Shown piece by piece: positions 18,125-62,978 of a stretch of DNA of 64,000 nt. The DNA comes from Lepidodermella squamata. Lineage: Eukaryota > Animalia > Gastrotricha. Under the pieces are notes generated by a model. The model saw only the letters and a list, made by a program, of their open reading frames with translations, was not told where the DNA came from and ran no database searches. The stretch lies in NCBI GenBank assembly GCA_047495785.1, contig JBLDXI010000007.1, forward strand, positions 2,418,001-2,482,000, written 5' to 3'. Numbering within the stretch: position 1 is the stretch's first letter; the number at the start of each line of letters is the position of its first letter. The position numbers and the translations under genes were made by a program.

Positions 18125-20718
18125 ATGTCATTAACCTGCAATAGAACAAATGCGTCGTGCCCTACTTTCAACGTGACCTCACACGATAATGACAACACTC
18201 TAATTATTGCTTTCGAGTGCATCTTTGTCGCTCTTTCTCTACTAGCTAGCATTTACGCCCGTTTCGCCGACCAGGATGACCGGAAAAAAGTTGAAGCCGT
18301 TCAATTTAGTAATTATTGCATAAAATCGCTATAATTTCAGTGGAGTTTTATGCCGCTTATCAACAATGAATCGCATCAAAAGTTGGAATATAAAATTTCG
18401 ATTTTCTGCTCCGGTGTTCGATCCGGTCACCTGGGTCCGAAAATTTCTATCCGCCTGCTCGGTGAAATTTGCGATACAACATGGCGCCATTTGGACGATG
18501 GCATTCGAAAGGTTTTATCCCCAAATCCCTTTCGAAATTGAATCAACTTTTTTCTACATAGTCATTCGATGGGTCGTCGAAAGTAGAAAATTTCAGTCTG
18601 AGAACATTCACGCCACTCGGTCGGATTAATACGGTTGAGGTGAATGTAGGGTGTCAGCTCGAGCCCCGGCTAAACGATGTCCCTTATTCGATTTACATCG
18701 ACCGCATTGTTGTCACGGACGTTGAGGAAAGTAACAGGTAAAAATTAATAAAAAATTGAATTGCTGTCATTAATTTCATTAATTCAGATTCGTGTTCTTT
18801 GCCAAGTCCCGAATTGTTAATGGCGGCTTGAATAAATGTTTCCAGCTGGCCTCGAAAAAAGAATTCGAGAGCTTCTTACTATTGTTAAGCGATTACCTCA
18901 CAACTTGGCTATTTCAAAGCCATTCTTGGATGTCAGCTTTTCAGGTAGATCATTTCAACTTGAGGTGCTTCGAACAACATTTTTGTTCCGCAGAGATGTT
19001 TTCCTGATAGTTTGTCGAAAATGCATCGAATCGCCATTTTGGCCAGCGGGGTTAGCCTTGCAATGACTTCGAACGCCATTCTCGTTAACTCAGATTACAA
19101 AGACAATAGCCAACTCATCTCAGCATTCTATATTTCACTTTCCCTCACTGTTCCTCTGTATGCAATTGAACTCGCATACCGAACTAAATTCTGGCTGGCT
19201 TCATGGGCAGGTATATCATGAGATTCGTCAATATTTATTGTAAACAAAATCACTATTTTTTAGCATTTGCTGCCGGCTTTTCATCTGCCTCGTACCATGT
19301 CACTGTGTCTAGTTTGTCCTGGACGTCAGAAAATTCTAAACAATGGCTATATTTCATGCTGCTGTATCTCGTTTTCGACATTTTCGTCGTTCAGTTGTTA
19401 AAAGGAACCCTCATCGCAGTTGTTAATTCGGCGTTGGGCCGGCTACCTGGCGATGAATCACCCTGGAAGTACGAGACAATTTTCAACGATGGTCTCCTGA
19501 TCACAGATATTGGTCTCGCTGAAAGCCAGGACTGCGAATCAACCAACAGTATTTCACATTTTAATTTCAATTATTTTGAAAATCTTCCCATAAATTAGGC
19601 TTTTCTAGGTTTTTCTGATTCCATTTTTTGTTTCAAAGTTTTTTGCGGCATAGACGTTTTTATCTTCCCATTTTAGTGCGTTTGGCGACGTGGCCTTACC
19701 TGTGTTCATAACTGAGCAAAATAGGAACATTGTGGGCTAAGAAGCTCTTGATCTACCTTGAAATACTTCCAAATATGGCATAGGTGACAGATAGTAATTT
19801 GGAAAATTGATGATCCGGGCTTCCCGATTTTTTTTTCTTTTTTTTTCACGGAGTCGATAAGGTTTCCCAACTCTACCATTAGCAACATATCGATCGTATC
19901 ATTAATAATGGAATGTTTTCGTGAAAAAACAAGAAACAAGATTTTCCCTCCAACCTTTTGCATGCATAATTACTTTGTTTTTTCACAACAAATTTGCATA
20001 ATTAATGATGCAAGGTAAAAAATTGCTGCGGGGAGCATACGTCCTGTGGAAACTTTGGGTTATTAGCACCCTGAATGCATTTTTGAAGGATGAAGGAGGT
20101 GATATCTATAAAGCTTCCCATTCGCCTTTTAAATGAGCAGCAATACATTTTTAAACTTCGACGTTTAGGAATTTTTAAGGGAATTACCAAGTTTCTTGAA
20201 TCGTGGATATAACATTCAAGTATTTTCTTGTTTTAGTTGAAAATGCACTTCTTCGACTTGATCGATTCGTCGAGCGGCGATTATCGATGATAGAAGCCGG
20301 CGATGATCAGGACAAACTGATAAGAAATGCAATCGCCTTAATGGCCGAGAGAATGGTCGCGCCGCCGAACGAGCAGCTCATCGACGGCCCAGTCTATGTC
20401 CCATCGCCCGAAGAAGGCAACGCAACATCTGCCGGGCCGGACTACGCAGACGACGGTTATCAGTCCATCACAGGCGGCATCGATTCATCTCGCCGGGGTT
20501 CGATGTGGTCGTTCGAGGCTGATGATGAAGAAATGGCGATTCGGCAACGCCGTTGGACGACTTCGACCCCGGCCAGGAGGAGGTCGAGTTTGCTGAATAT
20601 GCAGAACGAACAGGTGGAGTGTGGTGGCTATCGGGCGAGGGCTTCGACGTCTGATGCGCACAGTGTGGCGGCTCGAGCCGCTCGGAAACTTGCTGCTATC
20701 AGATCGAACAGGGTTTGA
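18125..20718 (+). CDS. Miniature polycystin-1-like protein (TM1-PLAT-TM2-5 + disordered tail), ~550 aa; exons 18125-18289, 18341-18511, 18562-18737, 18788-18944, 18994-19210, 19264-19548, 20237-20718
   Basis: PKD1-family signatures YARFADQDD, YKISIFCSG..ISIRLLG, PLGRI..IDRIVVTD, HSWMSAF, AMTSNA, SKQWL..VVQLLK; five 49-53 bp introns are frame-compatible; the last-exon link (688-bp phase-1 intron) is inferred. Confidence 0.72.
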
Positions 20719-23910: not shown

Positions 23911-23924
23911 CTATAGAATACCTA

Positions 23925-37356: not shown

Positions 37357-37914
37357 TTTTCTGCCTGTCGACCTTGGCTAATTGACTCAAGTTGTACATG
37401 CATGCATATGCCAAGCATATGAAAGCTAATTGGCCTCTATAAACCCTTTGTAAATATTCCAGGAAGAGAGGCTTGAAATAAACTAGACCATTGATGCTGA
37501 TCATATCCATTTTCTACTTGCAATGATGACCTGGTTGCGAGATTTTTGAAGGTGTAAAAATGCGTTTCTCGATTACTCATCTCGAACAGTCGTTTTGTGG
37601 ACACTCCCGCCGACGACGAAATAAGAGTGCCATTACATCATATTCTGGCATGGCGTTGGACTTCACACCTTAGTCGAACCAGCCGAAGTGGGAAATGTTT
37701 CGCATTCCAAGTTGAAAGTGGAATAAGGAGTAAGTATATCGTTGTTGAGGTCTAACATAGACCTGTCAATTATTTAGCGCTGACAATGTGAGAAAAACAA
37801 GCTACTTGGCGGCCGAGTGCAGAGAAATTAAATCCTATTTATAAAAACCTGAGCATATAAAAGCGTTGGCACTAACTTGGAGTTAAAAGAGATTGTCTTC
37901 GCTTTTTCGAAAAA

Positions 37915-38352
37915 ATGGTTCGGAGCTTGGCATTATCTATCCACCTTTTATCCGCTTTTCTGGTCCTGGCCAGCTCTCACAGACAAGCAGATGCGGATGC
38001 TGATGGCAAAAACATCTACGATGACGTTGAAGTACTAAGCAGCGATAATACTAACAAGCAAGGTGAAATCGTGAATTCTGACGCCGGCGAGACGCAACTG
38101 CAAGCCGACTGCAGTGGTTTGGATAACAATCAGAAATTCGTTGTCTGCTGTCATTTCAGTGCGGATAAATTGGTCAAGTGTTGGCTAGAGGACCGCAAGA
38201 CTTCGGACAAAACCTCAGCTGAATCAAGCGAATCCATGTCAACGACTACGAAGAGGACCACGCCAAGAAGGATTACTACTGCCACAAAATTTCAATCGAC
38301 GTCTAGAAAAGCTAAAACTACGACAAATGAAAATTACTATAATTATGAGTGA
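37915..38352 (+). CDS. Small secreted protein family member A1 (145 aa)
   Basis: Signal peptide; TQLQADC..QKFVVCCHF core; Thr/Arg-rich tail; TATAAAA ~60 bp upstream; intact in duplicate. Confidence 0.75.
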   Translation: MVRSLALSIHLLSAFLVLASSHRQADADADGKNIYDDVEVLSSDNTNKQGEIVNSDAGETQLQADCSGLDNNQKFVVCCHFSADKLVKCWLEDRKTSDKTSAESSESMSTTTKRTTPRRITTATKFQSTSRKAKTTTNENYYNYE

Positions 38353-39051
38353 TTAGGCTTTTCCCATGTTCGATGATGAATGACGGCTGTGAATTCCATA
38401 GATGAATAATAAACGCATAACAAAAATCCCAAGAATTCGTTTCATGAATGCGATTTTAGTTCACTATGTTTGAAGAGGGCGCCAACAATTCGTTAAATAT
38501 ACATTAGACGGCTGAAAAGGTACCTGGAACTTTCCTAAATATTCTTTGCCCGCTTTCACAGCACAACAGCCTTCGGTTTGATCGGCCTAAAGAGGATACT
38601 TTTTGTTAGACTCTATGCCCCACAACCGGCCGAGGGGGAAATCAGACATCAAATTACAGTGAAACCTCAAAACTCACAATGAAAATAAGGCTCAAAAATT
38701 ACCCGCAAATATTCCAACCTCCAACCTAATCCAAACACGTTTTCGATCGCTTAAAAACAGTAAAATCATAAAATCACCTTATACACCTGTTTATGCACAA
38801 ATTTCTGAATAAAACTATGATTTTAACCCTGAGAATTATGGTTTTGTCCAATGGTATTCTAAATTCCATTGGGCGAAGGTCTACCGAAATCGGATCTCAT
38901 TTCAGACATGTATTAAGCTGTTTTGATGGCAGCTGAGTGCAAAGAAATGAAATTGCACGTTTTATAAAAAAAAATCGCTCATTCACGCGATGCATAATGA
39001 TAGCAATGGCATGGAGTTATCAAGGGTTACATAATATTTCAGTTCTTGAAA

Positions 39052-39516
39052 ATGGAATTCACCATTCAACGGCATTCAACATTATCTCCTCTCTATGTCT
39101 TATCAGCTAGTTTGATTCTTATTGGCGGCGTTCAATCAGCGGACGACAATATATACAACGGGGGAATGCCGGAAACGAGCAAATTTGATGGAGCTGACTG
39201 GTATGACCTTGACAGCAGTGAAATAAGCAATACTACCAGGCAAGGTGATTCTACGACACAACTGCAAGTCGATTGTAATAGTTTGAATAACAGTCAGAAA
39301 TTCAATGTCTGCTGTCATTTCAGAGCCGAAAAAATGGATCACATGGCCCGAAATGCCTCTGACGCTCAATCAAGTGAATCTATGACGAATGGAGCATCGG
39401 CAACGAAGAGGACCACGCCGAGGACTCGAAGGAGGATTACAACCACAGCGGACTCTCGATCAACGTCTAGGAAAGCTAAAACTACGACGCTTGACAGCGA
39501 TTATTCGTTGGACTGA
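39052..39516 (+). CDS. Small secreted protein family member B1 (154 aa)
   Basis: Hydrophobic N-terminus; TQLQVDC..QKFNVCCHF core and KRTTPR..SRKAKTTT tail shared with A1. Confidence 0.75.
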   Translation: MEFTIQRHSTLSPLYVLSASLILIGGVQSADDNIYNGGMPETSKFDGADWYDLDSSEISNTTRQGDSTTQLQVDCNSLNNSQKFNVCCHFRAEKMDHMARNASDAQSSESMTNGASATKRTTPRTRRRITTTADSRSTSRKAKTTTLDSDYSLD

Positions 39517-39797
39517 TTTTTGGGCTGTTCAATAATCCTTAATAGGAAATTTTGTAGCTATATATTCCGAAAATACCTGATAAACATCAGGAAATATTTT
39601 GAAGTTTTTTTTCATAACAATGCTTTCGGTCAGTTCCAGTTCGCTTCAAAAATTTGCCCGAAAATGTGTAATTCGCGGAGAATTTAAAAAAAAAATAAAG
39701 AGAATATTGATCAATTTATTTCAGTTGCAAAAAATATGTTAGATGAATGGGCGCGCGCCTGTTTCTCTTCGAAATCGTAGTATTTTAAGATTTTTCA

Positions 39798-40087
39798 ATG
39801 CAAATTTTACGAGGCATGATTTCTATGGTTCGATTATCGAAAGTCGTACCTTTCGTCATACTCTTATTAATTATCGGCCTGTTTTCTATCCATCCTCTTA
39901 ATCTAAATATTCAAGGTCAAAATCAAGCAATATTGTTCGGAGCTCGACACCTCATGACTTTCAGAAGCCGGAGCTTAAAAAATGAATCGATCAATCGCGA
40001 AGCTCTTACGAACATTACTGTATCCGACTACCTACTCAGAGATGGCAATGATGGTTTTGACGCGAATTCAAGTTATGAAGCGGTGAA
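39798..40087 (+). pseudogene. Truncated 5' fragment of the fucosyltransferase-like gene
   Basis: Matches 62979-63270 then homology ends at the duplication junction; no catalytic region. Confidence 0.7.
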
Positions 40088-41184
40088 TTCCCTTTTCATC
40101 ATTGGGATGAAAGTTCGAATATTCAATGAGTTCCTGAACTACCAACAGTATTTATCGGATTTATCTGCAATTTTTCAATTTATTATTTATTTATTTTTGC
40201 ATAAATCTGCAATTTAGTTTTACATTAATTCTGATAATTTTTAATTCAATTTAAATGGCGATGTTAAGTATTTCCAATTTTTCCGAACTTTTAGCTTCAG
40301 GAAATGTTTGCCTACTAGCATGAAAAATTAATTTAAGAGGGCTTTTTAAAGGTTATTTATAGTTTTATTTTTAATCCTCGCCCATTGCCAATTTTTCGGT
40401 AATTTTTCGAAAAATTGTCCGCGTGTCCGTGTAAGTTGCATTTTTGATGCGCATTTCACTTTATAAGTTGCCCTAGATCAAGAATATTGCCGGCGAGCGG
40501 TGTTATGATAATTGTAATCACTCAATAAAAATCGATTGCTTGCCGCGAACGGGGATTAAACAAATAAAGACTGAGACACTGGATCTGCGTCATTGCACAT
40601 TCCGCGCTTGTAAATATAAATACTCACCTATCTCAAGATGATATTTGCGGCAATCAGAGAAATATGTCTTATCTATATATTAGCAATTTTATCGATTTGG
40701 ACCCACTATCAAGTATAGATTCATTTAATTTGGGTGTTCTAGATTTCTTACTATCGCGCATTTGAGAGCCACTTCCGCTAATTTTCAGGAAATGAGATGT
40801 CATATGATCTTTACCGTCATGCTTCCTGTTTATACTAGGTCAAATGACATAATCACATTCCAATACTATTTAGGCCGTTATTATAGGTCACAAATCCCAA
40901 AAGTGATTAGTTTTAATTTCCGAAATTTTAGTAAAATTCTTAATAAATTTTATGCTGATTAGGGATGCGAGAACGAATTGGTCATCACCTTTCCCCCTTG
41001 AATCCTAGATCATCGAAAATCGAAACCAATGTCTCCATGCGTTGTGATTTTATTTGTTATTTCAGGTGACACTCTTAAGGAGTTGGTTAATTATTAACGA
41101 ACAACGTCGCAAATTTTATTCCGCAAAGATTCCAATCACATTCAGTTACAGCATAATCCAGAAAATTTCTGCATTTAGTCAACG

Positions 41185-42305
41185 ATGAACGAAGGAAGAA
41201 TTGCTGTCACGTGCCAACCGGGTTGGGGTGGTTCCGACTGCTCGGATGGTTAGATAATTTCAATATTTTTTAAATATTTTTTTCGCGTTTAGAAATGTTG
41301 GAGGTGTAATTGATCGAAGCCTCCCAAGAGGCTGTTTGCTAAATTTTTTGAGACAAAGGTTACCATGTGACTCGCTGCGCTTTAGTTTTTCATAAACTAA
41401 CGCGCTGGCGGGAATATAATCGGACATAGTAGCATAGCTTGTTTGGCCTATAAAATGTTTATCCTATCGCTGGGGGTAACTCATTATTCAGCCAATTATA
41501 GCCGAAGTGACTAACCATGGTCCCGAGGGATTAAAGTTAAAACGGACATTTGCATATAGGATTCGGCACATTATGAGATGCGAAGCTAGCTTGTTATCTT
41601 TTGCGCAACTTAATTTACGAGATTTTTTTTCAAATTTCAGCTAATGGACAACATTTTCACATGTTAGTCGCCAAATTTGATATTAATTAAAAAAAAAATT
41701 CAAGTAAATTTTAATTTTTACCAAAAAATGAAGACTCTAAAATTTGGCCAAATGTGAAATTTCGAAATATTAAATTTTTATTCTCAATAAAGATCAGTTT
41801 CGATTTAAAATTTAAAATTCTTTAAAATTGTCTAAATTTCATTCCTTAATTTAAAATTTCTCAAATTTCATTTCACATTTTAAATCTCTTAAATTTTATT
41901 AAATGTCTTTTCCTTATTACAGCAGTCTGCAATCCAAAATGTAAGGACGGCGACGTGTGTATCGCCCCAGACACCTGCTCTTCGAAAATCGACATCCCCG
42001 AAGCTAATGGCGTATCGAGATGCCGGCATTTCTTCGTCGCTGATTCGGCTCTGGAAGAAAATCACGCGCTCGAAGATCACCTGATACAACTACCTAGATT
42101 ATCTAGCAGCCAGGTGGCCACTCTAGTGCTGATCTGTGTCGCCAGTTTGTCTATCCTCTTCATCTGTTCCTTACTAGTTTACGCCACGAAACGAAGCGCT
42201 GAGCATTACATGAAGAGAGTAGCGGCGGCTGATAGAAAATCAATCTCGTCATCGAAAAAACTGGTGATTCAAGATAATGCGCGGCTTAGCATGGATGAAG
42301 CCTAA
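41185..42305 (+). CDS. EGF/NIM-repeat-like membrane protein, copy 2
   Basis: TCQPGWGGSDCSDAVCNPKCKDGDVCIAPDTC + TM; mostly synonymous differences from copy 1. Confidence 0.65.
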
Positions 42306-42965
42306 ATTGGTATCCAAAAACTTTCCAAGCACGACGTGCTCTATCAAAAATGTCCGGCTTCATTTTGCTGCCCAGATTTTTTGTTAAAGAATAAAGATGA
42401 GTCATTTATTTGATTTTTTTCTCCAATTTCCAATATAAAAAACTAGCAAGGTGGCGACTGGAAGATACTATATCGATCGATTATCGAAATGAACTAAACT
42501 GCGCGATGTTTGCGCAGCGTGCAGGTTTTGTTTTTGCGAGTTTTTTCCTGCCGTGCCTAAGGGGACGCCTTTGCACCAACGCCTGGCGACTGATTATTGT
42601 GTGACCGCAGCTGCTGCTGCTGCTGCTGCTGCTGCGTCGCAAAAAGACGATGCGAAGCTGCACCGAATCAGTCTGAAGGCTGATAATGGCTCTCTTGCGG
42701 GTTGAGACTATTACCAACAATAAACAGAGATAACAAGCTACCCTGGTAATTTTATTATCGCTGATCTCTACCAGAAAAACAAAGGAATTTTCATGCGCAT
42801 TCTAAAATGGTCAAATAAAAATTCCTCCTTAAAAAAATATAATTTATTCCGTTTTTTTTAATTACTTTGTTCCCCATGTTTTGTCTGTTTTTATCGTCTT
42901 TAGATATTATGAAAGAACAGATTTGACATCTTGCAGAAAATTGGCAGCAATTATTGCGGGTCGGC

Positions 42966-45900
42966 ATGTCATTAACCTGCGATAGAACAAATGCGTCGTG
43001 CCCTACTTTCAACGTGACCTCACACGATTATGACAACACTCTAATTATTGCTTTCGAGTGCATCTTCGTCGCTCTTTCTCTACTAGCGAGTATTTACGCC
43101 CGTTTCGCTGACCAGGATGACCGGAAAAAAGTTGAAGCCGTTGAATTATTGCCGTAATTATTGCATAAAATCGCTCTAATTTCAGTGGAGTTTTATGCCG
43201 CTTATCAACAATGAATCGCATCAAAAGTTGGAATACAAAATTTCGATTTTCTGCTCCGGTGTTCGATCCGGTCACCTGGGTCCGAAAATTTCTATCCGCC
43301 TGCTCGGTGAAATTTGCGATACAACATGGCGCCAATTGGACGATGGCATTCGAAAGGTTTTATCTCCAAATCCCTTCCGAAATTGAATTTACTTTCTTCT
43401 ATAGTCATTCGATGGGTCGTCGAAAGTAGAAAATTTCAGTCTGAGAACATTCACACCACTCGGTCGGATAAATACGGTTGAGGTGAATGTAGGGTGTCAG
43501 CTCGAGCCTCGACTCAACGATGTCCCTTATTCGATTTACATCGACCGCATTGTTGTCACGGACGTTGAGGAAAGTAACAGGTAAAAATTAATAAAAAATT
43601 GAATTTCTGTCATTAATTTCATTAATTCAGATTCGTGTTCTTTGCCAAGTCCCGAATTGTTAATGGCGGCTTGAATAAATGTTTCCAGCTGGCCTCGAAA
43701 AAAGAATTCGAGAGCTTCTTACTATTGTTAAGCGATTACTTCACAACTTGGCTATTTCAAAGCCATTCTTGGATCTCGGCTTTTCAGGTAAAAAATCATT
43801 TCAACTTGAGGTGCTTCGAACAACATTTTGTTCCGCAGAGATGTTTTCCTGATAGTTTGTTGAAAATGCATCGAATCGCCATTTTGGCCAGCGGGGTCAG
43901 CCTTGCAATAACTTCGAACGCCATTCTCGTTAACTCAGATTACAAAGACAATAGCCAACTCATATCAGCATTCTATCTTTCACTTTCCCTCGCTGTTCCT
44001 CTGTATGCAATTGAACTCGCATTCCGAACTAAGTTCTGGCTGGCTTCATGGGCGGGTATATCATGAGATTCGTCAATATTTATTGTAAAAAAAGCATTAT
44101 TTGTTAGCATTTGCTGCCGGCTTTTCATCTGCCTCGTACCATGTCACTGTGTCTAGCTTGTCCTGGACGTCAGAAAATTCTAAACAATGGCTATATTTCA
44201 TGCTGCTGTATCTTGTTTTCGATGTTTTCGTCGTTCAGCTGTTGAAGGGAACCCTCATCGCAGTTGTTAATTCGGCGTTGGGCCGGCTACCTGGCGATGA
44301 ATCACCCTGGAAGTACGAGACAATTGTCAATGATGGAATTCTTATTACAGATATTGGTCTCGCCGAAAGCCAGGACTGCGAATCAACCAACAGTAATTCA
44401 AATTTTACTTTCAATTTTTTTGAGAATCTTCCCATAAATTAGGCTTTTCTAGGTTTTCTGATTCCATTTTTTGTTTCAAAGTTTTTTGCGGCATAGACAT
44501 TTCTATCTTCCCATTTTAGTGCGTTTGGCGACGTGGCCTTACCTGTGTTCATGACTGAGCAAAATAGGAACAGTGCGGGCTAAGAAGCTGCTCGTGATCT
44601 ACAGGGTGTTCTTTTTAAAACCGAACATCTTGGCGCCGACGTAGTAGGCCTTCAAAACATGCAAATTTAAGCCCTGTAATTTTATAAAAAATATTTTTTT
44701 CACTGTATGAATAAAATTTAATGATAAATATTGGAAAGCGTTGTTTGACCTTCATCACACGTCTCTAACGGTTCCCGTGGTGGCAGCGTCCTTCGTTGGC
44801 CCATGACAAGTCACTCCGCTCGCTGTGTCAAATCCTGCTGCTGTTTCAAATGGCCGCTATGTACTCTCCTCAATCGCTCTGATTTTGCGAGCAATGGCTA
44901 GGCTAATTGCTCTTCTGTTATTGGAAACTATGCTTACATAGAATATATTTCATAGAATGCAACTTACAAAAGATCAGCGAATTTTTGTCGTTCAGTTTCT
45001 CGGCAACAAAGAAACTCGAATTCCCTACAGAGTATTCTCGGAAAAGTTTATGCAAAGGTTTCATCGCAAGGCACCCAGTCGTTCCAGTATATGGCAACTA
45101 GTAAAAAAGTTTACATCTGCAGGCTCCGTCCTCAACGCCAAACGCGAAAGGCGCTCAACCGTGCGTACGGATACACTTAAACTTCTCATTGCCCTTGAAT
45201 TCATGGAAAGACCGAGATTGTCGTTACGCCGAGCAACGTTACTTCTTTCTCTGTGTAAATCTGTCATATGGACTGTTTTGCGAAAGGACTTGAAGTGGAA
45301 AGCATATCGTACGAGAAGAGTGCAACGACTGCTTCAAAAAGATTACACGCCTCGTTTAATATTCACCAAGACTTTGTTGCGAATACACGAGAAGGATCCT
45401 GAGTTCCTTAAGAATATTTTCTGGACTGATGAGGCAATATTTCGTTTAGATGGTAATGTCAACACTCGAAATACGGTCTATTGGGGCGAATCGAATCCCC
45501 ACGATGTCTACGAACAACCCTTGCACTCCCAGCAGGTACATGTCTGGGCAGGTTTATGGTCTGGTGGTGTCGTCGGTCCATTCTTTTTTGACTCTAAGAA
45601 AAATTCCCGGCAGGTAAGTTCCGCGAAAGGTAAGAAAAAGCAGTCGGGTTCTCAGAAAAGCACGAAAGGTAAGAAAAAGCAATCGAGTTCTCAGAAAAGT
45701 GTTGCGCAAAAAAACAAAAAAACGAAAGCTAAAGCTATTCTTAGAAAAGCTTCCGAGGCGATTCGAAAGAAAGCGCTAAAAAGTACGACCAAACGCCGAG
45801 CTCCAAGGCCAGAAACTAAAGGAGTTGGAGAAGCATCGTAAGTTGTTGAAAACCGAACTTTAATCCCGTATATTTCTTTTATGTTAACAAGTTTCTTGAG

Positions 45901-48900
45901 AATGTTGGAGCAAGAAATCTGGCCCGAGTATGTGAGGCTTGTTCCGCAAAGTTCAAAGAATCATTTTCAGCTTGATGGAGCGCCATCGCATCGCTCGCAG
46001 CTTGTGGTAGACTGGCTTGATGAGAAATTTGGAGAACGCTGGATCGGTAACGGAGGAACTGGGTGGCTGAGATGGCCACCAAGGTCAGTTGAAGGCTTCA
46101 GTGAACATATTTTTCCTTAACATACTATGTACCGTAGGTCCCCCGACTTGACTCCTCTCGATTTCTCATTTTGGGGATATTTGAAAGCTAAAGTTTACGC
46201 CAGAATGCCAAAAAGCCTCGATGAACTAAAGAAATGTATCATTGAGGAAAGCCATGCAATGCCACCCGATTATTTCCAAAAGATTTGCGTCAATGAAATG
46301 ATACGGCGATCGGAAGCTTGCATCGAAGCCAAAGGGAGACAGTTTGAACATCTCGTGTAATGCTAATTTTACTCATATCTACCGCTCTTTGTTGTTGTTT
46401 GTTTTTTAGCATTGCGATGTTTCTTGTCATTTCTCGGTGTTTGTCACGCGATCTGCGAGTGACCAGTCTTGAAAATCGTAAACTAGCTCGAGCAGCAAAG
46501 GCGCATTTCAGCAAGAATGTTATCTAGTCCTGACTTTATATTTTACTGTGACGTCGTCGTTGTGATTCTTTGCGCATTCTCTTATTAAACAAAGTTAATT
46601 ATCGGATTATTGTGAATTATGTTTTTGTAGAAAACATAGATGCTGGAGAGGCTAATTCTCATTTTACCCATGTTCTTAATGGGAGTTTTAGGATTCAACA
46701 AAACGTCGGAGTGTCCTCAAGATCTTGCACAATGGCCTCTGAACAGCCCGCTCATGAAACAATGCATTTCTTATTGGAGCTTCCTTATTCGCACCTTCGG
46801 TTGCCGGAGTGGTGTTTGGTTGGACGGTACCACCTGGAGTGAAGTTGTCTCGAAATTGGTCGGCTGCGTAAGCGATTTACGACGAGACGTCATCCCAACC
46901 AGAAACGCGGATCAATTTTGCCAGATTCCGGCTGCTCTTGAAAATCAGTCATGCAAATCAGCGTTGCGCACTGATTTCGTATTAATACTCAGGGTTGGAA
47001 CAACTGTGAGTTTCTTTGCAAATCAAACCGTACCAAAGCCTAAGTTCTGGGTGATTAGGGTTGCTTCTTTGGAAACGAAGATTTTCTGAAAGTTCACGAA
47101 GGACAGCAGGTAAATAATTGATCTACTATTGATCTTCGTCATCTATTTTGTTAAACTTAGTTTTCAACGATGGCGGTCTCTGTTCCACTCGGATATTTGC
47201 GTACCCGATATCCCGGCGAAGGTGGTAGCATTTTCTGGTGAGTATTTCGAAATTTGTCTTACACTAGTGTTCTATCTTATTTATGTCTAGGGAAATTTCA
47301 TCCGCCCGCGTTATTAATTTCTGCCAGTTGCAATTTCGTCGCATCCGTTTTTTCTTATATTCGTATTTCTTTAAAATGTCCTGTTTACTAATTGCGACTG
47401 CTATATTCGTTTGGCGTTGCATGGTAGTCTTGTTCAAATAAAGCGAAGTCGTTTTCAAGGAGACAGTTTTATTTTATTGATAATTATTACGACAGCAAGG
47501 CTAAGTACAAAATGCCACGACGATGAGATCAACAATGAGATCAAACGCACTTTTTGACTGAACAATAATTTAAAACCATATCCAGAACCAGTATGGTAAA
47601 TAAGCGAGCATTGCGAAATATATCGAGAACACAAATAATTTGAGTGAGCGGCATAACCAACAACATATACGCCGATGATACTCATCTAGAAGAACGATTT
47701 TCATAAATGAGCACATGTGGAAAAGATAAATTTTTTTCGCGAATATCTTTGGTGTTAAAGCGATAAAACGATATAAAAATAACAAGCGGCGCAGCGTGAA
47801 CATTTTAGGAACAAATTGGCAGTGGTAGCCATAGGTAACAATCATCTCAACCGACGCACAGCATGTAATAAATTGAATTTTTCGTTTATCCGAATGTCGA
47901 ATTAGGAGACTTCCGACCAAGTACAACGCGTAGGGCAAATATTGCAAACTCGTAGACAAGTCCTCACGAACTGATAGTGGCAAAGTTACGATCACCACAA
48001 TCACAATATTCGGTTGTGCAATTGTTCTTCCAATTGACGTTCTTGCAGCGATTGAAAACAGAACCAGATTTAACATGATGCGATAAATCGTTAACCCGTC
48101 AATTTCACCGACTAAAAACGCAAAATCGTAAGACATCTATTTCACTCAAAACACATTTATTTTATTCAAAAAATTACAATAACAACTCATAATAAGGATG
48201 AGAAGAATGAGGTGAAAACGAGATCATTGAATAATGAAGCAATAAATTATACCATAGATAATAGAAATAAGATTTGCGCCGGCACCTCGGCGCCGGCGAA
48301 AAAACCGGCGCCCGCGCACCTGGCCGCCAACGAATTATTGCACAATTACACATATGCGCGCGGCAGTTGCGACAGAGCGCGACGCCGATTACGCTCACAA
48401 AACGCACAAGACACGCGCACACTGTTATTATGTTACAACTGAAACAATTTTCAAAATTTTAACAACAAATTTAATACCAAATGATAATGACCAAGCCAGG
48501 CGAGGAACCAGTAGCGAAACAGATGGCGCTAATTCCTTAACTTGTAGCGTCCGTTAGTCTTCCGCGCCTGCTCTGGCAGATGGAAATAGCTTTTCAATTT
48601 TGCGAAAAAACCGTTCATCGAATAATGATTGAAATTAGCGTACAAGAATAAGAATACCCATCGTACAAAGCATGACACGCTGTGAGCATTAATACCAAAA
48701 GGTTCAAAAAATATACTAAGTTCGATTTGAGTCTCAAACAGCGCGTCAACAATAATTTCCAGAAATGCACTGGCTAACACATGAACGAGGCCTGTTGATT
48801 TTTTGCCGTATCGAATAAATTTATAAGCCAATATGATCAAATATGGAATAAATTGGAAAGATTTAAAGGACCCATGGCAGCATGACAACGGTAGAATTTG

Positions 48901-51900
48901 GCTCAGTAGCAGGTTCTGGAATTGGTACTGCTCGAGATACTTTTCAACTTCAGTCACAGTTTCCTTATAACTATTGAGCAGTGATGAATAAATGGTGATG
49001 GCGCTCTGGAAGAAAATTAGCTTACATTAGAAAAAAATCAAATATTAAGTACTTACAGATGAAACAACATCAGCGATAGATTTCTCTCCTTTCTGCAAAT
49101 AGTGACAAAGAGGGGCAACACTCGCATATAGAATCGAGTATACGTTGAACATGTTGTCTGGTAACGTTGAGATGCAGGTACGAAATTCAATGGAACTGGC
49201 CATTCTCGAGCAATTTTTGACCATTTCAAGCTTCATCTTAGTCTCCTCTTGACGGCAAACCAGGAATTCAGCTGCGATTGATCGCTGGAGAAATAATTTA
49301 GATAACAGGCATGAAAGAAATTTGACGATCATACGTGATCAGGCTTCTCCTTTTTGCATTCTGCAGCAGCCCAAGCATAAGCAGGTGGCCAACACTCCCC
49401 GGCCAGCTGAGAATAATATGCCCGAAATTGTTTTCCGCTGTACAAAAGCCACGAAGACCCCCCCATATTATCTTTTTCAACAGGTTTCGCAGAGGACTTT
49501 GCAGAGGTCTTCGCAGAGGCCTCCGTGGCCATTGCTGTATCGAGAAGAGCAACGATAATCATGATCACCATGAAATTTGCCATAATAAGAATCTAACAAT
49601 TAAAAACAACTCCCAGTTAACTTGAGCTTAACTTTAATTTTAAGAAGTCAACGCCTGCGCGAAGCTCTTCTGGATCGGGTTCGATTGCGTCGGGGTTTTG
49701 GTTGTTCGAGGTGTCGTGAGGTCAGCCTGAGGTAAAGAGGACTCTGCAAAAATAAAATTATTAATATAGCCCATGAAAGAAAAAAAACATTGATAATAAT
49801 GAAAACGAGCTCGGTGTACGACTCGATGACGCAGCTGCAGCTAGCTTCGGCCAAATCGAAGCTCTGCCCCATCTCAGATGAGAGCAGCAGGGCATCGATA
49901 TCAGTATCCATAAACAAGTAACAAGTAATGAATCTATCGAATTAATATCGATTATTATTCATTTGAAAACATGAACATGCAATTATTAACAACATTTAAA
50001 AGCAGTAAATAGGAAATGCATAAAGATATTGGGTCCGAAAACAATGGGCAATGGGCAAGACTACTTGTCTTTTTTGGGGGTCGGGCTGCTGGGAGGCGGG
50101 GGAGGGGATTGACTGCTGCCTTCTTGCACAGCTGCCGACAAAGTCGTCAGGGCATTGTAATGTTCGTATGAATGAGACAGCCTTGTGCGGCGATGGCATC
50201 GGCGACCAGCCATACATCCGAAAAGGAAAGAGAGTGTTGTAAGTAGCATGAAGGATACTCCGACAAGGATAAGATGAAACTCCGACATGTCGATGTGAAT
50301 AAGTAACGGTTTAGAGGGGCCCGCGAGTGTGGGTTGGGTCGAGCTAGGATGGTCAGTAGGTCGATTAGTCGGTAGGTTTGGTAGGTCGGTAGATTCGGTC
50401 AAAGTAAATTTAGAGGGCAGGCGGAAAATAGGCAAAAATCTGGTTGTGCTTTCATCGTTGCTGAATGGGTATTATTTAGGGTAATCCTATTGCATTATGT
50501 TTGATAAGACTCACGTATCACAAAGCCCATAGAGCTCGCACTCGATAGGAACGCTGCGGGCGGGGCATGCCAAAGTTAGTAAAAACATCAGGAACAACAT
50601 CTAGGTCGAGTCAAATTAAATATAGCAATGTGGGGTGTTTTTGAAGCTCGGTACTGCAAAAAAAACCGCGGTAAGGTCACAAAAATCGCCGGCTAACATC
50701 AAGCTATGATACTGTGTCACTAACTGAAATGGGTCATGAGTGGAAAAAAATGCTCAGTATACACCTGCACTTGGAAGTGATGCTTCAAACTAAAATAAAC
50801 GCAGTTTTAATAAAGGGTATATTGCTAACCCCAAAATTTTTCAGGATACCGCGAGGAAACCCATTTTAGTCATCCCATAATGTACTCTGGAATCAACTAT
50901 GAAGAAAATAAATGTTTAAACTTGGTAGGCTTGAAGAACGCACTCTGGGTAGCACTCTGGAATGCCGTGGAAATGCCTCAATTTCGGTATTTAAAAGAGG
51001 GAATTTAATGATCAGCCAATGGAACATTAGAAATTTTCAATAAAAAACTCGACGGTTACGTTATACACCAACTCCAGCTCTATCGAAAAACGCGTTTAAA
51101 AATAGGGGTAGCGGGCGAAACGAGAGCGGAAAACCCTAATGAAAATGGGTCTTATCGACGTTTTTCAAAAAAGCTTTGTTTCAAGTCGACGGCCCAAGTG
51201 CCTGCCGCCCAAATTTTGAATAAAAGTGGGTGGAGTCGAATTTTTTATTTTTCAAAATTTGGTTACAATATGATATAATTAATATATTTTTAAAAAATTA
51301 TTGATATTGGTAGCAATTTATATTGCTGCTGCTGCAGTAAAACAGAGGCAAATTTGAAGATGTTCGGTTTTAAAAAGAACACCCTGTACCTTGAAATACA
51401 TCCAAATATGGCATATAGTGACAAATATAGTGACAGATAGTAATCTGGAAAATTGATGATGCTTCTGCTCAGTATGGCGCCAGAGTCCCCTAAAGAGTTC
51501 CAAGCCCGATATACATCTGTTTTTTTCTTTTTTTTCACGGAGTCGATAAGGTTTCCCAACTCTACCATTAGCAACATATCGATCGTATCATTAATAATGG
51601 AAAGATTTCGTGAAAAAAACAAGAAACAAGATTTTCCCTCGAACCTTTTGCATGCATAATTACTTTGTTATTTTCACAACAAATTTGCATAATTAATGAT
51701 ACAAGATAAAAAATTGCTGCGGGGTGCATATGTCCTGTTGGGGTTTTAGGCGCCCTGAATACATTTGTGAAGGAATGGGATGTTCCATAGTTAGACTTCA
51801 CTGTTTCCAGTTAGTTAGTGTTCCAAAATGTTAGTTAAATTTCCCAATTTTTAGTCGTAGGATTTGATGGAAAAGCGATATCATAATTATGACTCAAAAA

Positions 51901-52565
51901 TGAAAAACCAGTCGCCTAATCCGACATGTTTCATTTTTGAGTCATAATTAAATTTCCCATTCGCCTTTTTTAATGAGCATCAATAACTTTTTAAATGAAT
52001 TCCACGTTAAGGAATTTTTTGAGGAAATTACTTGAAGTTTCTTGAATCGTAGATACAAAATTCAAGTATTTTCTTGTTTTTAGTTGAGAATGCACTTCTT
52101 CGACTCGATCGATTCGTCGAGCGGCGATTATCGATGATAGAAGCCGGCGATGATCAGGACAAACTGATAAGAAATGCCATCGCATTAATGGCCGAGCGAA
52201 TGGTCGCACCGCCGAACGAACAGCTCATCGACGGCCCAGTCTACGTTCCATCGCCCGAAGAAGGCAATGCAACATCTGCCGGGCCGGACTACGCAGACGA
52301 CGGTTATCAGTCCATCACAGGCGGCATCGATTCATCCCGCCGGGGGTCGATGTGGTCGTTTGAGACTGAAGACGAAGAAATGGCGATTCGGCAACGCCGT
52401 TGGACGACCTCAACCCCGGCCAGGAGGAGGTCGAGTTTGCTGAATATGCAGAACGAACAGGTGGAGAGTGGTGGCTATCGGGCGAGGGCTTCGACGTCCG
52501 ATGCGCACAGTGTGGCGGCTCGAGCCGCTCGGAAACTTGCTGCTATCAGATCGAACAGGGTTTGA
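42966..52565 (+). CDS. Miniature polycystin-1-like protein, copy 2; inferred last intron 44393-52083 hosts the transposon
   Basis: Same exons as copy 1; donor ACA|GTAATT and acceptor TTTAG|TT are phase-1 compatible. Confidence 0.65.
44957..46360 (+). CDS. Tc1/mariner transposase, rosa/DD41D-like (DD43D), ~431 aa; exons 44957-45837, 45892-46083, 46138-46360
   Basis: N-terminal HTH region, FWTDEAIF, VHVWAG, GPFFF, FQLDGAPSH, WPPR|SPDLTPLDF, WGYLKAKVY, GRQFEHL; two 54-bp introns give one open frame. Confidence 0.92.
46640..47441 (+). CDS. Transposon cargo gene 1: ~214-aa Cys-containing protein with signal peptide and C-terminal TM; exons 46640-47005, 47059-47109, 47161-47237, 47291-47441
   Basis: Three GT-AG introns of 53, 51 and 53 bp give a 645-nt open frame; no recognisable family. 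Confidence 0.72.
47570..48136 (-). CDS. Possible cargo gene 2: hydrophobic 188-aa ORF
   Basis: ATG-initiated ORF with several hydrophobic stretches; exon structure unresolved. Confidence 0.4.
   Translation of the reverse strand: MSYDFAFLVGEIDGLTIYRIMLNLVLFSIAARTSIGRTIAQPNIVIVVIVTLPLSVREDLSTSLQYLPYALYLVGSLLIRHSDKRKIQFITCCASVEMIVTYGYHCQFVPKMFTLRRLLFLYRFIALTPKIFAKKIYLFHMCSFMKIVLLDEYHRRICCWLCRSLKLFVFSIYFAMLAYLPYWFWIWF
48529..49583 (-). CDS. Transposon cargo gene 3: ~317-aa signal-peptide protein with Cys-containing ectodomain and hydrophobic C-terminal region; exons 49583-49335, 49284-49057, 49005-48529
   Basis: Phase-0 introns of 50 and 51 bp (GTATGA..CAG, GTAAGT..CAG) join three ORF-track fragments in frame. 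Confidence 0.75.
49648..49911 (-). CDS. Possible cargo gene 4: 87-aa single-TM protein with acidic N-terminus and Arg-rich C-tail
   Basis: MDTDIDALL..LVFIIINVFFLSWAILIILFL..RRNRTRSRRASRRR; topology obeys the positive-inside rule. Confidence 0.5.
   Translation of the reverse strand: MDTDIDALLLSSEMGQSFDLAEASCSCVIESYTELVFIIINVFFLSWAILIILFLQSPLYLRLTSRHLEQPKPRRNRTRSRRASRRR
50061..50600 (-). CDS. Transposon cargo gene 5: ~161-aa type I membrane protein with Pro/Thr stalk; exons 50600-50515 and 50460-50061
   Basis: Signal peptide MLFLMFLLTLACPARS, 54-bp GTGAGT..CAG intron, TM followed by RRCHRR, Pro-rich tail. Confidence 0.72.
51884..51950. repeat. 67-bp palindromic insertion (mini-MITE) absent from copy 1
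   Basis: taattatgactcaaaaatgaaa ... tttcatttttgagtcataatta; copy 1 at ~20105 lacks it. Confidence 0.6.
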
Positions 52566-52785
52566 CTTATATAATTTGATGCTTATTTTAGAATCGTGAA
52601 GTATTTACAAGCAAATGTAACGATTGAAACGCCTGGTTCTGTTGTGTTATGTTGTGAATTTTAATTCGACTTGTGAAATAAAATTTCTATTTTGTTCAAT
52701 GCTTGGCGGTTTGTTGGTTGGTCCAGCCAATGACCTGGCTCGATTGGATGCTGTTGTAGTAAGCTCTTATTTAACAGAATCGTGT

Positions 52786-53874
52786 TTATTCGAATTTCAA
52801 ATAACGGAGCCAAACAGGAGGCAAGACGCCACTCAATCCATTGTCTATAGCATTGTTTCGCTTTTTGTAACTAGTTGGTAGTCGCTTGAGAATTGACATC
52901 CTACACAAGGTTTGTAGCTTCATCGGGAAAAGTTCCATAATATAGGGCATCAATATCCGATTCACAACAATTCCAGCTGCTGAATCATACATCGGAGCTT
53001 TGTATTCTATAGGGTTGAATGAAGAAGTCATACGAGAAAATTGAAGCATATCGAATAGCTGATAGTCGACTCGATCAGGGATACTTATTCTGTCGTAGGC
53101 CCATCGCGCGAGGATTGCGAACGTCAAATCTTTGGCACCCCGTTGGCATGTATACCCCGACCATATCAGAGATTTCGCAAAGGCGGCTTTAGGACCACGG
53201 GGATAAATGGGTAATTTTATCCCTTGAATGGTGACCCAATCTGGCTGCGAAACCATGGAATAGACGTCCCAATAATAGCAAGCCAAATCATATGAAAAAT
53301 GAGCTCCAGATTCGATCAGCATTCTCGCTCCCATTTTGAATCAAACCCAATAATACAGGAATTGAACAAGGCCATGGACTTCTCTATTGGTACATCCAAA
53401 CTCGCCCCGCGGCTCAGAAGGAGCTCAACAACAGGTTTAAACCCATGTTTCACACTAAATGCCAAAGCCGTATCCAAATGAGGACATCCGTAGTTGACAT
53501 CAGCTCCATGATCAAGTAGAATTATCACGGTTTCCACACGGTTGTCGAGACGGTCTTCACCTCGATTATTCTTTGTCACATGCGAACTGATTGATTCAAG
53601 TTCAGCGCTTCTATTATTAGGATGGCAGGCTGCTGCTAAGCATGTGAGTTTGCTGTTAGATAGACCGTACGAGAATGGAGTATCCAAGTTCACTTTAACC
53701 AGGGATAACAGATGCTTGAGGCATTTAGGACTTGCTGTAGCGCTGACCAGCCGAGCGATTTTTTCAGCTCCAAACACTGTAAATCGCACTGTCCAGCAGA
53801 CACGAAAATTCGACAATGTTGTCGTCATCGCATGCCTGAGCGAATTTAGCCCTATCGAAATCATCAAAGCTCAT
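52786..53874 (-). pseudogene. Ankyrin-SOCS-box paralogue with two frameshifts
   Basis: Colinear with 20940-22040; +1 shift near 53780 and -4 shift near 53330 split it over three frames. Confidence 0.8.
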
Positions 53875-54153
53875 TTTGCAATAAGAAATGAATGCTTATT
53901 CATACGAACGTTGAACGTGAGCTGATAACCATTGCGATAAGCAAAAATGTAACAAAATTGCGATTCATTTCTACAACCATTTCCTCCTAAATTTTCCACC
54001 CTGTTACTGATAATGAATTACGGCAATCGGGAATGCGATAAGCAGCAAAATATAGAAGATGACGCAGAATACAGTTCATGTCTCTTTGGCGCGAGAGATC
54101 TTCTCGTACGAGTCAAATACTAGCACTGAGAAATACTTGCCTATGAAAAACAC

Positions 54154-55228
54154 ATGAATTTCACGGCGTTTAAATTGTTATCCCTTCCTTGTGTATTGGT
54201 GAGCAATGAGCATTTTGTAATGAAGCATGTTCATTGTAGTTACTGTTTCGCTTAGCTGGCAGGTTTAGCCTCCTGTGCTGGAGTAGATCGCGGTAACCGA
54301 GCGGATTGGTCGAATAAATTCGTTCTTGAAGACGAATCTGGTCATGCTTGTGTCATCCTCATTGCTGAATACTTCAACGTTACGGCAGTGGATTGCAACG
54401 GAATCTATGGTAGCTGGCTTATCGTCAAAAACAACACCAAGGTTGAGGGAAACTGCGAAGCAGAGTTCAACTTTATGAAGATTATCGATGCCGCCAATAA
54501 GGTTCAGGTAAGTGCTATGGATTTTGTTTGATTAGATCCTGATATTAGTGAATACGATATGTAATGAACGAGTTTTGTTGAGGTCCAGAGATGCTCGCCA
54601 AACTCGAATGCCAAAAGCAAATGATTAGGGATTAGGTAATAATCCAAACTTTCTCTCGGGATCCTCAAACAACTTGATATTTTCATCTCCCTTACATCCA
54701 TTACGGCGTTATATAATCAAACTCAAATGATGTAACTAAGAAATAATCTTCAAGGTCTGGTTCAACTTCACTAAGACTGGCAACGATAACTTCCATATTG
54801 GCTACGCTGTTGTTGCTTTCGGCCCCGTGGATGCTCCCATGTGCATTGATTCGCGTGACATGGTAAGCAGTGACATGAGAGCTCCTGAAGGCTACGTTTA
54901 CAGCTGCAAAGCAGAGAAAAGCATGGTCTTAGGAACAGCCATCGTATACCTGTCAGGCGTCAAGTTGCAAGCTTTTCACCAAGGCAATAGCACTGACTTG
55001 ACTGGTATGGATGAGTACATCTGCGCGGAGGATGACCCCGAGTCAAACATTCTATCGATCGTCGTCAGTTCCCTGGCTGTTCTATTCATCATAATCGGCA
55101 TAGTAATCCTTGTGCTCATTGTGCGTGCGGTCTATTTCAACGGCTTTTATGTGAAAAAGAGCGAGCCAATTTTAGGTGTAAATCACGATGAGCCAGCGAA
55201 ACTAAATAAAAGATTATTCTATGGCTAG
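54154..55228 (+). CDS. LAMP-like protein, copy in X'
   Basis: Same three exons as 22821-23910; in-frame deletion in exon 2; last exon nearly identical. Confidence 0.75.
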
Positions 55229-55242
55229 CTATAGAATACCTA

Positions 55243-55834
55243 CAGGGTGTTTCATAAAAATTCGTACGAGATGCATTATATTAGCATGCAGAGATAATAT
55301 AAGAAAAGTGTACTGCCGTTATCACAAGGTTGCATTGTTCTTGTATTAAGCGTCAATGCTCATGGCAGAAGTTCAGCAGAGCTCCGAATTCGCCGCGCTT
55401 GTTGTGAGTTTAAAAGATCGACTTTGAAAACATATAGGCAGAGCTGTGATAGTCCATGTGATAGTCCATGACTCAATCGCCACGGTACATGACTGCGGGG
55501 TTTACCGATTAGCAATTGTTCGGCCAGGCCATTTGAAGAAGTAGGATTAAATTATTCCCGAATATTTCATTTACATTTCTAGAATAAAAGTGAAGGGGAG
55601 ATAACTTATTCGGCCAAACTACTACAATTAAATTTACCCTAAATTTTTCACGTCAACTCATACGAAATTAATAAATATTTAAATGACTATTTTTAGTGAC
55701 ATCTCATCCGTTACAACTCGGCCGGGGGGTCAAGGGATGAGTTGTCACTAAAATTATTTGTTTGATATTTAAATAATTTTTGATAATATTTTTTAAAATT
55801 CAGAAAAAATACGAGGAAATTTTTGGCCACCCTG
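55243..55834. mobile_element. Duplicate of the CAGGGTG-terminated non-autonomous element
   Basis: Matches 23925-24547. Confidence 0.5.
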
Positions 55835-56288
55835 TATGATATCACCCGGGATTCTCTATAAATCGGATGTACCGAAATTTAACTGGAATGATACCAAATA
55901 GGAATCTAAATTCCAAATAAGCTCAAATATTTTAACGTGAGAGCTAATTTTGTCTTGGCAGAGTAAGATCGATAGGTAATATTTTGTACGATTTTTTTCC
56001 CATGAAGAATTACTGAGGAATGAAAAATGTATAGCTTAAGGGCAAAGGGGATAAGACATTGTTTCAGCTGAAACCATTTATAATTTAAAGGGAGCTTCTG
56101 AGATACAATAATTATGTGCATCAAAACTATACTTGTTGAAATGGACCTCATCTTCGGCGACTAGACACTTCGTATTTACAACAAAAAACCGGTCGAAATT
56201 GACTGGCTTGGTAATTGCAGGCATCTTTTTTTACAGAGTTCGAAAAATCTCTCCCCATAGGTATTTAACCGCCTCGTCTCATCGTCTT

Positions 56289-60545: not shown

Positions 60546-60741
60546 TTTTTGGGCTGTTCAATAATCCTTTATAGGAAATTTTGTAGTTATATTACATTCC
60601 GAAAATACATGATAAACATCAAGACATAGTTTGAACTTTTTTTCATAAAAATGCTTTCGGCCAGTTCCAGTTCGCTTCAAAAATTTGCCCGGAAATGTGT
60701 AATTCGGAGAATTTAAAAAAAATAAAGAAAATATTGATCAG

Positions 60742-62876: not shown

Positions 62877-62978
62877 TATAACGTATTATTTCAGTTGCAA
62901 AAAAATCTGTTATATGAATGGGATTAGGAGGCGCGCGCCTGTTTCTCTTCGAAATCGTAGTATTTTAAGATTTTTTAA

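Follow-up and report, generated by a model that had tools for sequence, protein, structure and literature searches.

The window analysed here, a 64,000-nucleotide stretch of the genome of the gastrotrich Lepidodermella squamata (contig C7:2418001-2482000 of a 121-Mb, 151-contig assembly), contains a transposon of 6,785 bp at C7:2462602-2469386 that encloses a spliced transposase gene and a set of predicted membrane-protein genes (Table 1). Unless a contig is named, positions are those of the window. Judged from its sequence, this 6.8-kb element has the hallmarks of a Tc1/mariner transposon, namely a TA target duplication, short terminal inverted repeats (TIRs), a D,D,D catalytic triad and an N-terminal helix-turn-helix (HTH). 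It does not have the typical size or the single open reading frame (ORF), because at 6,785 bp it holds at least two further transcribed genes. Tc1 elements of the typical form average about 1.3 kb in length and have one ORF (PMC7325037).

Insertion as a unit at a TA site

Taken together with the adjoining TA, the two arms of the element (44600-44631 and 51357-51388) are 32 nt long, made up of the 30-nt TIR plus the TA, and are 100% complementary. The 28-nt core of the TIR occurs exactly twice in the window, where no occurrence is expected. The junctions read gtgatc-TA-CAGGGTG on the left and CACCCTG-TA-ccttgaaat on the right, and a paralogous site at 19745-19770 reads gatc-TA-ccttgaaat, with the same flanks joined over a single TA. 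This site belongs to an old tandem segmental duplication that emerges from comparison of the window with itself (15117-24912 versus 40237-56199, 83–96% identity). Block 16133-19756 aligns with 40967-44602 at 89.5% identity up to the insertion point, and identity resumes at 19830 and 51520.

The 6,785 bp are present in one paralogous block and cleanly absent from the other, as is expected of an insertion that followed the duplication. Excision of Tc1/mariner elements normally leaves a footprint. The initial annotation had described perfect 30-bp TIRs, a TA duplication, an exact empty site near 19754 and the insertion of the whole 6,785 bp as one unit. All four points are borne out, with the clarification that the unfilled site is a position in a duplicated paralogous block about 89% identical to the one that carries the element, that is, in a segmental duplication rather than an allele.

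A spliced and expressed transposase

Transcript evidence comes from a public run of 2015 (X1), whose contigs carry SMART cDNA adaptors and omit short GT..AG segments, which identifies the run as cDNA. Because X1 contains the left junction between host and element, its source organism has the same insertion. The contig that crosses this junction (window 44460-44750) starts in host flank, of which it includes 139 nt, continues across the left TIR and ends inside the element; it represents either host-side read-through transcription or genomic DNA in the cDNA library.

In X1 contigs 45837 is followed directly by 45892, and 46083 by 46138; the second joint aligns as 46081>46136 and is set 2 nt further on. 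Two 54-nt GT..AG introns are thereby absent from the transcript, and the spliced transposase coding sequence is open throughout its 431 codons. The N terminus of the protein corresponds to the HTH family DUF4817 (Pfam PF16087; E 3.8e-5, 23.7 bits against a cut-off of 22.6), and its catalytic residues, D158, D322 and D366, line up with the triad in six homologues. With this open frame, both introns in cDNA, the triad and the HTH, the earlier description of the transposase as intact holds. The Pfam DDE_3 match is weak in the transposase itself (E 0.057) and clear in the homologues P0004 and P0005. Relatives are few: a word-based protein search returned only six, at 35–38% identity, and a PDB sequence search with the transposase gave no match. 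The spacer between the second and third catalytic aspartates has 43 residues, compared with 41 in the nearest database homologue (P0001, 38% identity).

The catalytic domain contains an 82-residue Lys/Ser-rich insert (residues ~213–294) directly after the GPFFFD strand. The corresponding DNA (window 45593-45838) is of low complexity, includes two 37-nt direct repeats (45624-45699) and lies within a cDNA-covered exon. The insert is missing from all six aligned homologues and is otherwise found only in a degraded transposase paralog elsewhere on the same contig (C7:3902137-3903675), which is 64–71% identical at the amino acid level and is broken by stops and by two interruptions of ~420 bp. This paralog starts exactly at the ATG and lacks both TIRs and a 5' leader.

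The ends of the element, which begin CAGGGTGTTC, share the terminal motif C[A/C]GGGTGT with elements that encode homologous transposases: TA is followed by CCGGGTGTCC in metagenome contig L066 and by CAGGGTGTTT in L071, the contig that encodes P0004. The recurrence of this motif beside homologous enzymes indicates that ends and enzyme belong together. The 6.8-kb element is apparently still functional as a mariner-type transposon.

A cassette of membrane-protein genes

Behind the transposase gene lie three cargo genes, A, B and C, and two shorter ORFs, D and E. Gene B has the firmest transcript evidence. One cDNA contig of 1342 nt, which terminates on one side in a SMART adaptor, covers 49556-49335, 49284-49057 and 49005-48140, and thereby defines introns of 50 and 51 nt that read CT..AC on the forward strand, equivalent to GT..AG on the minus strand. 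The product of gene C has a signal peptide, then a stalk rich in Pro and Thr, a single membrane helix and a tail rich in Pro. The cDNA contigs of this gene cover 49958-50447, end in an adaptor at 49958 and represent an unspliced exon 2 transcript; exon 1 and the predicted intron have no cDNA cover in X1. Gene A is a model with three GT..AG introns of 51–53 nt, for which hydropathy predicts an N-terminal hydrophobic signal and a C-terminal membrane helix in a product with seven cysteines. No X1 cDNA covers it, and neither a genomic paralog nor a Pfam match was found.

The length of ORF D is reached in only 2 of 300 dinucleotide shuffles. ORF D matches positions 162-261 of the B-family profile described below (E 3e-4 among 4195 ORFs), and part of it (47667-47866) has ~76% DNA identity to repeats near a B-like gene on contig C10. 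This ORF is probably a B-family paralog, truncated or divergent, of which just the membrane core is left. Neither cDNA cover in X1 nor a database homologue (word-based protein search) was found for ORF D. ORF E likewise has no cDNA cover in X1, and has a paralog beside a C-like ORF on contig C48 (phmmer 1e-9).

The initial annotation had proposed at least three multi-exon cargo genes with surface-protein products, as well as two weaker ORFs. Splicing is confirmed for gene B by its junctions in cDNA; the cDNA of gene C covers exon 2 only, and gene A remains a gene model. ORF D gains support from the shuffle test, and neither D nor E appears in cDNA. The products do look like membrane proteins; a location at the cell surface does not follow, and the architecture suits a membrane protein of the endoplasmic reticulum (ER) or nuclear envelope at least as well.

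None of the cargo ORFs matches Pfam above noise. Genes A and B match only themselves in the genome at ordinary thresholds, and degenerate paralogs of gene C, with stops and 52–58% amino acid identity, are found on contigs C24 and C48. For no cargo gene does the genome contain a near-identical donor; the best paralogs have 23–58% amino acid identity and mostly contain stops. The C48 copy is part of a degenerate block of C-like and E-like sequence (C48:728616-729716; L005 700-1800) within a ~1.9-kb intron of a beta-ureidopropionase-like (carbon-nitrogen hydrolase) gene, and no TIRs were found around this block.

An inverted-repeat scan of the 6.8-kb element found no inverted repeats or target duplication bracketing the cargo. 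The cargo was also considered as a nested element with inverted repeats of its own, and this was ruled out because no internal TIR pair or transposon boundary was found.

Table 1 Features of the 6.8-kb element and of the paralogous unfilled site (window coordinates)
Feature	Position	Strand	Details
Unfilled TA site in paralogous duplicated block	19754..19755		
Left TA target-site duplication copy	44600..44601		Paralogous unfilled site has one TA
Left TIR, begins CAGGGTGTTC...	44602..44631	+	100% complementary to right arm
Transposase gene, 431 aa	44957..46360	+	Exons 44957-45837, 45892-46083, 46138-46360; introns 45838-45891, 46084-46137
Cargo gene A, predicted, 214 aa	46640..47441	+	Exon-chaining model; introns 47006-47058, 47110-47160, 47238-47290
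ORF D, predicted, 188 aa, multi-hydrophobic	47570..48136	-	ORF length and B-profile match
Cargo gene B, 317 aa	48529..49583	-	Exons 49583-49335, 49284-49057, 49005-48529; transcript to ~48140
ORF E, predicted, ~87 aa from ATG 49911	49648..49917	-	One membrane helix, Arg-rich tail; tail-anchored-like
Cargo gene C, 161 aa	50061..50600	-	Exons 50600-50515, 50460-50061; predicted intron 50461-50514 (54 nt)
Right TIR	51357..51386	-	100% complementary to left arm
Right TA target-site duplication copy	51387..51388		

Gene B belongs to an unannotated protein family

A paralog of gene B on contig C10 is encoded by a single exon (L004:55-918, 288 aa) and has the same cysteine pattern and membrane part. 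Using phmmer, gene B matches P0008, encoded on contig L065, at 1.8e-24 and the C10 paralog at 4e-19. A search against 1.84 billion representative proteins with a profile built from the C10 paralog and the gene B exons gave 20 matches, six of them below 1e-10. In the B-family profile search of the genome, gene B scores 5.6e-52.

The family alignment (A3) is characterized by a signal peptide, a helical, lumenal or extracellular domain with six cysteines (CW..C, A..L.C, NC, C, C), the motif SQ.lP...F..QF and, in the C-terminal part, three or four membrane helices with a conserved glutamate, then NGR[F/Y] followed by basic residues. Gene B carries every one of these features. An AlphaFold (AF2) model of the family member P0013, computed with A3, is all-helical, with a predicted local distance difference test (pLDDT) score of 77 that rises above 90 over the cysteine domain.

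The fold search that the initial annotation had recommended for the cargo was run on this B-family model and returned no PDB or ESM Atlas match: Foldseek found nothing in the PDB at E<=0.001, and template modelling (TM) scores in the ESM Atlas stayed below 0.3. A VIA wide fold search reached a maximum Z of 5.4 and retrieved generic helical bundles only. Feature searches of the ESM Atlas, with the C10 paralog and with exon 3 of gene B, brought up no usable match, a word-based protein search with the same exon gave none, and no Pfam family matched the B-family members. The B family is unannotated, being absent from Pfam and from the PDB and ESM Atlas representatives searched.

B-family genes adjoin related transposases in other organisms

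Five contigs that encode B-family proteins have usable flanks. In four of these the B gene (P0013 on L066, P0009 on L067, P0011 on L068 and P0024 on L069) adjoins a DUF4817/DDE_3 transposase homologous to the 431-residue enzyme, with phmmer values to that enzyme of 1e-23 for L066, 6e-39 for L067, 2e-23 for L068 and 7e-8 for L069, where the transposase is fragmented. L066 is a complete 3.4-kb element, TA-CCGGGTGTCC...GGACACCCTG-TA, and contains the transposase, a B gene that is divergently oriented and a pair of small membrane ORFs, one of which is kept in L068. L065 encodes the closest relative of gene B, which adjoins a C-like small type-I membrane gene; no transposase lies within its 3.7-kb contig. 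L071 combines the related end motif with a transposase and has no recognizable B gene in the following 1.6 kb. On L067, a Ty3/gypsy-type pol ORF of 1343 residues (reverse transcriptase, RNase H and integrase; 5082-9113) lies 1.6 kb from the transposase/B pair.

Between L066 and L068 the transposases are 47% and the B proteins 38% identical, and each of these two compared with L067 gives 35–37% and 24–26%, respectively. The 6.8-kb element is more distant, at 27–32% for the transposase and 22–25% for B in this comparison; among its metagenome relatives at large the transposase identity is 25–32%. The rank order of pairwise divergence among the four elements is the same for both proteins, which weakly supports parallel divergence of transposase and B across these four taxa.

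These contigs bear out the suggestion of a gene-carrying mariner family, since B-family genes stand beside homologous transposases in four independent metagenome contigs, as well as in the sister lineage described next.

A sister mariner lineage in the same genome

Within the assembly, the intact ORFs closest to the transposase are four identical, intronless ones of 385 residues, 39% identical to it, on contigs C17, C24, C33 and C61. At all four the B-family profile matches at 6e-47; the match lies ~0.9 kb past the matched N-terminal stretch and no more than ~1.5 kb from where the ORF starts. On the other side from B, matches to Pfam NEMP (nuclear envelope membrane protein, PF10225) end ~290 bp before the start of the transposase match. 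The ends of this lineage give no match to the TIR of the 6.8-kb element within 3 mismatches. The sister mariner is like the 6.8-kb element in belonging to the same transposase clade and in carrying a B-family gene, and differs in its ends, its lack of introns, its four identical copies and its Pfam-recognizable NEMP ORF, which is missing from the 6.8-kb element. A B-family gene is found in two predicted mariner lineages of this genome that differ in their ends and whose transposases are 39% identical.

Profile searches of the genome place NEMP at 15 and the B family at 21 positions, many of them in identical pairs, triplets or quadruplets. None of the 15 NEMP matches falls within C7:2462602-2469386. 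NEMP and B matches are paired within 1–6 kb on C17, C24, C33, C61, C102 and C54, and two B places lie 1.3 and 5.7 kb from further NEMP matches. The repetition of these loci fits a B family that lives largely on mobile elements, and suggests that several different mobile elements carry the NEMP/B pair.

The B family could instead be an ordinary host family of small invertebrates or protists that happens to lie near transposons and has been captured several times without benefit. The transposases beside B genes are indeed very divergent (25–39% amino acid identity), gene order and orientation vary between elements, and at least one B-like gene (C10, L004) has no transposase within 3 kb. We nevertheless consider this account unlikely, because the same transposase clade adjoins B in four of the five contigs with enough flank, both genes diverge in the same pairwise rank order, and many of the genomic B places occur in identical pairs or quadruplets, as expected of repeats.

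It is also conceivable that a short, transposase-only mariner inserted here and that the 5-kb block was added later by nested insertion or repair synthesis. One copy cannot reveal the order of events, and internal stretches of the element (49634-49686 and 49940-49973) are repeated elsewhere in the genome. The lack of an internal TIR pair, target duplication or transposon boundary around the cargo nonetheless makes later acquisition most improbable, as does the same transposase-plus-B layout in the sister lineage and in L066, where it lies inside the element's own ends.

Unloaded elements with the same ends

A DNA search of the assembly with the whole element matches only the element itself, and in DNA run X2 the contig that holds it has a flat depth of 34.8; it is a single-copy sequence. 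By contrast, a 30-nt pattern composed of TA and the first 28 nt of the TIR has 34 matches on each strand of the genome at up to 3 mismatches, against 0 for the same pattern written backwards. Twenty of the paired sites were fetched for comparison. About 16 are TA-flanked elements of 3.57–3.79 kb, 96–99% identical to one another and each at a different site (for example, C2:1930623-1934385), a level of identity that indicates recent amplification. One further copy of this family, 87% identical, lies inside a 7.7-kb composite, and the remaining sites (L049, L051, L060, L062, L063 and L064) are rearranged or composite versions of 5.4–10 kb. Among these, L062 (C121:12882-18459) is a 5.6-kb variant made of two opposed copies of the right part of the 3.7-kb family, a near-palindromic 'foldback'.

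The 3.7-kb elements share with the 6.8-kb element only positions 1-28 (to 34 at one end); beyond the ends no DNA- or protein-level similarity was found. The fetched copies contain no transposase, no cargo and no long ORF. An Rfam search with the family gave no match, Tandem Repeats Finder reports two short arrays in it and nothing else, and BLAST reveals an interior repeat offset by ~370 bp at ~72% identity. In the assembly, the 6.8-kb copy is the only element that joins these ends with a transposase. Given that the 28-bp ends are identical and that the 3.7-kb elements encode no transposase of their own, the 6.8-kb copy is likely to be the source of the enzyme that moves the ~16 elements. The search for further copies proposed earlier has a divided outcome: same-end elements exist, but they are 3.7 kb long and free of transposase and cargo, and no other loaded copy was found.

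This arrangement resembles the cross-mobilization of MITEs (miniature transposable elements with inverted repeats) of the Stowaway kind, in that the partners have only the terminal 28–34 bp and the TA target in common with the autonomous element. It differs in that the partners are 3.7 kb long, not miniature, and have an unrelated interior; they are not deletion derivatives.

The single loaded copy also bears on whether the cargo is a one-off transduplication, in which an ordinary mariner of ~1.9 kb took up ~5 kb of host DNA and became a single dead-end copy with a neutral load. All other elements with these ends lack cargo, C-, D- and E-like fragments exist on C24, C48 and C10, and A, D and E have no cDNA, all of which would fit such an event. 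What makes it distinctly unlikely in our view is that there is no near-identical donor locus for any cargo gene and no close parent copy of B, that gene B keeps every family motif and is transcribed and spliced, and that B genes recur next to transposases of the same descent, both in four other contigs and in the sister lineage. The initial annotation had named two findings that would overturn its reading, a one-off captured host fragment and unsupported cargo junctions; the family distribution speaks against the first and the gene B cDNA against the second.

Surroundings of the insertion

The window contains a further large, diverged tandem segmental duplication (36957-40087 versus 57944-63271), and such duplications, at 83–96% identity, occupy much of it. 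A search of the genome for the nematode SL1 leader gave no match. About 1.4 kb to the right of the insertion, ankyrin-repeat ORFs with a weak SOCS-box match (window 52786-53867, minus strand) mark an ASB-like gene.

Comparison with known systems

By its sequence features the transposase resembles the rosa/DD41D kind of Tc1/mariner ('Visitor'), with which the element shares a TA duplication, TIRs of ~30 bp and a D,D,D triad whose spacer is long, exactly 41 residues in P0001. Rosa is listed as DD41D (PMC7325037). The 6.8-kb element differs in its 43-residue spacer, its 82-residue insert, its two introns and its two to five further genes.

Further ORFs are known from TBE and Tec, ciliate relatives of Tc1/mariner with three ORFs (PMC7325037). 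These are alike in combining a Tc1/mariner-type transposase with additional genes, but they are of the DD34E type and reside in the germline nuclei of ciliates. Among their extra ORFs are one for a zinc-finger protein in TBE and one for a site-specific recombinase in Tec, and none for membrane proteins. No sequence relation to the 6.8-kb element was seen.

The closest architectural parallel to the B family is the KAR5/GEX1/Brambleberry group of nuclear-fusion proteins (Pfam Tht1), whose members have a signal peptide, six conserved N-terminal cysteines, a helical or coiled region and 2–4 C-terminal membrane helices (PMC4291462). B-family proteins likewise have a signal peptide, a six-cysteine domain and C-terminal membrane helices, although architecture alone proves no homology. 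The six cysteines of Kar5p (C56, 68, 91, 105, 116 and 141) are spaced at 12, 23, 14, 11 and 25 residues, close to the 12, 17, 15, 12 and 23 of gene B and the 12, 16, 13, 11 and 24 of the C10 paralog. B-family proteins are shorter, at 270–350 residues compared with about 500 for Kar5p. A genome search with Pfam Tht1 gave no match, and its controls were silent too. The structure searches brought up no solved structure with which to compare the fold. The resemblance to KAR5 is suggestive but unproven, and we do not assign the B family to the KAR5 family.

Interpretation and implications

The explanation that we favour, and regard as probable, is that the locus holds one autonomous DUF4817-HTH Tc1/mariner element whose cargo is a long-standing, selected passenger of its lineage and not a chance capture. 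That the B family recurs beside homologous transposases, in the sister mariner as well as in other organisms, points to such a long association, and we infer selection on the cargo from this deep conservation across lineages. An autonomous element of the D,D~41–45D clade, here DD43D, would have inserted as a unit at a TA after the local segmental duplication. Its spliced 431-residue transposase appears to be expressed and would also supply the enzyme to the 3.7-kb elements. Behind the transposase the element would carry a membrane-protein cassette, with B transcribed and spliced and with C, also transcribed, a putative small type-I membrane protein. Our best guess is that the passengers may act as membrane proteins of the ER or nuclear envelope, in cells of the germline or early embryo, and so favour propagation of the element. 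This guess draws on the KAR5/GEX1/Brambleberry-like layout and cysteine spacing, on the basic C-terminal tail and on the repeated co-carriage with NEMP genes in sister elements.

Several observations weigh against this explanation. There is a single cargo-bearing copy, so that mobility of the loaded element is deduced from one insertion event, and the Lys/Ser-rich insert interrupts the catalytic domain of an enzyme whose activity is predicted from sequence. Genes A, D and E lack RNA cover in the single cDNA data set, and the degenerate C, D and E paralogs on C24, C48 and C10 could be capture sources as easily as relics of related elements. The low identity to the metagenome relatives leaves room for a host family having been captured independently several times. 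Where in the cell the passengers would act is conjectural, as the AF2 model has no PDB or ESM Atlas match and Pfam Tht1 (PF04163) matched none of 19 B-family sequences at E up to 10.

A bolder proposal, which we think rather unlikely, is that this Tc1/mariner clade, and apparently other DNA transposons of this genome too, may encode nuclear-envelope or ER machinery of its own that raises transmission through germline or zygotic nuclei. If so, the machinery would consist of a divergent KAR5/Brambleberry-like protein, often accompanied by NEMP-like and small single-pass proteins. Possible routes would be access of the transposition complex to chromatin, biased fusion of pronuclei or karyomeres, and transfer between cells or individuals.

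Full-text literature searches returned no paper on a mariner with membrane-protein, NEMP or KAR5-like cargo, and mentions of DUF4817 were incidental only; nor did any paper name the sample accessions of the related contigs. The transposon machinery described here is of an ordinary, already known kind; what departs from it is the conserved membrane-protein load. Tc1/mariner is the textbook minimal transposon, consisting of two ends and one gene. The lineage described here breaks this pattern, with membrane-protein genes kept down to 25–39% transposase identity and with gene B spliced in cDNA. The autonomous 6.8-kb copy and its 3.7-kb partners, sharing 28 bp, form a natural test of the load that can be moved by a mariner transposase. 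Passengers with a role at the nuclear envelope, if that is where these act, would represent a new means by which cut-and-paste transposons manipulate a host.

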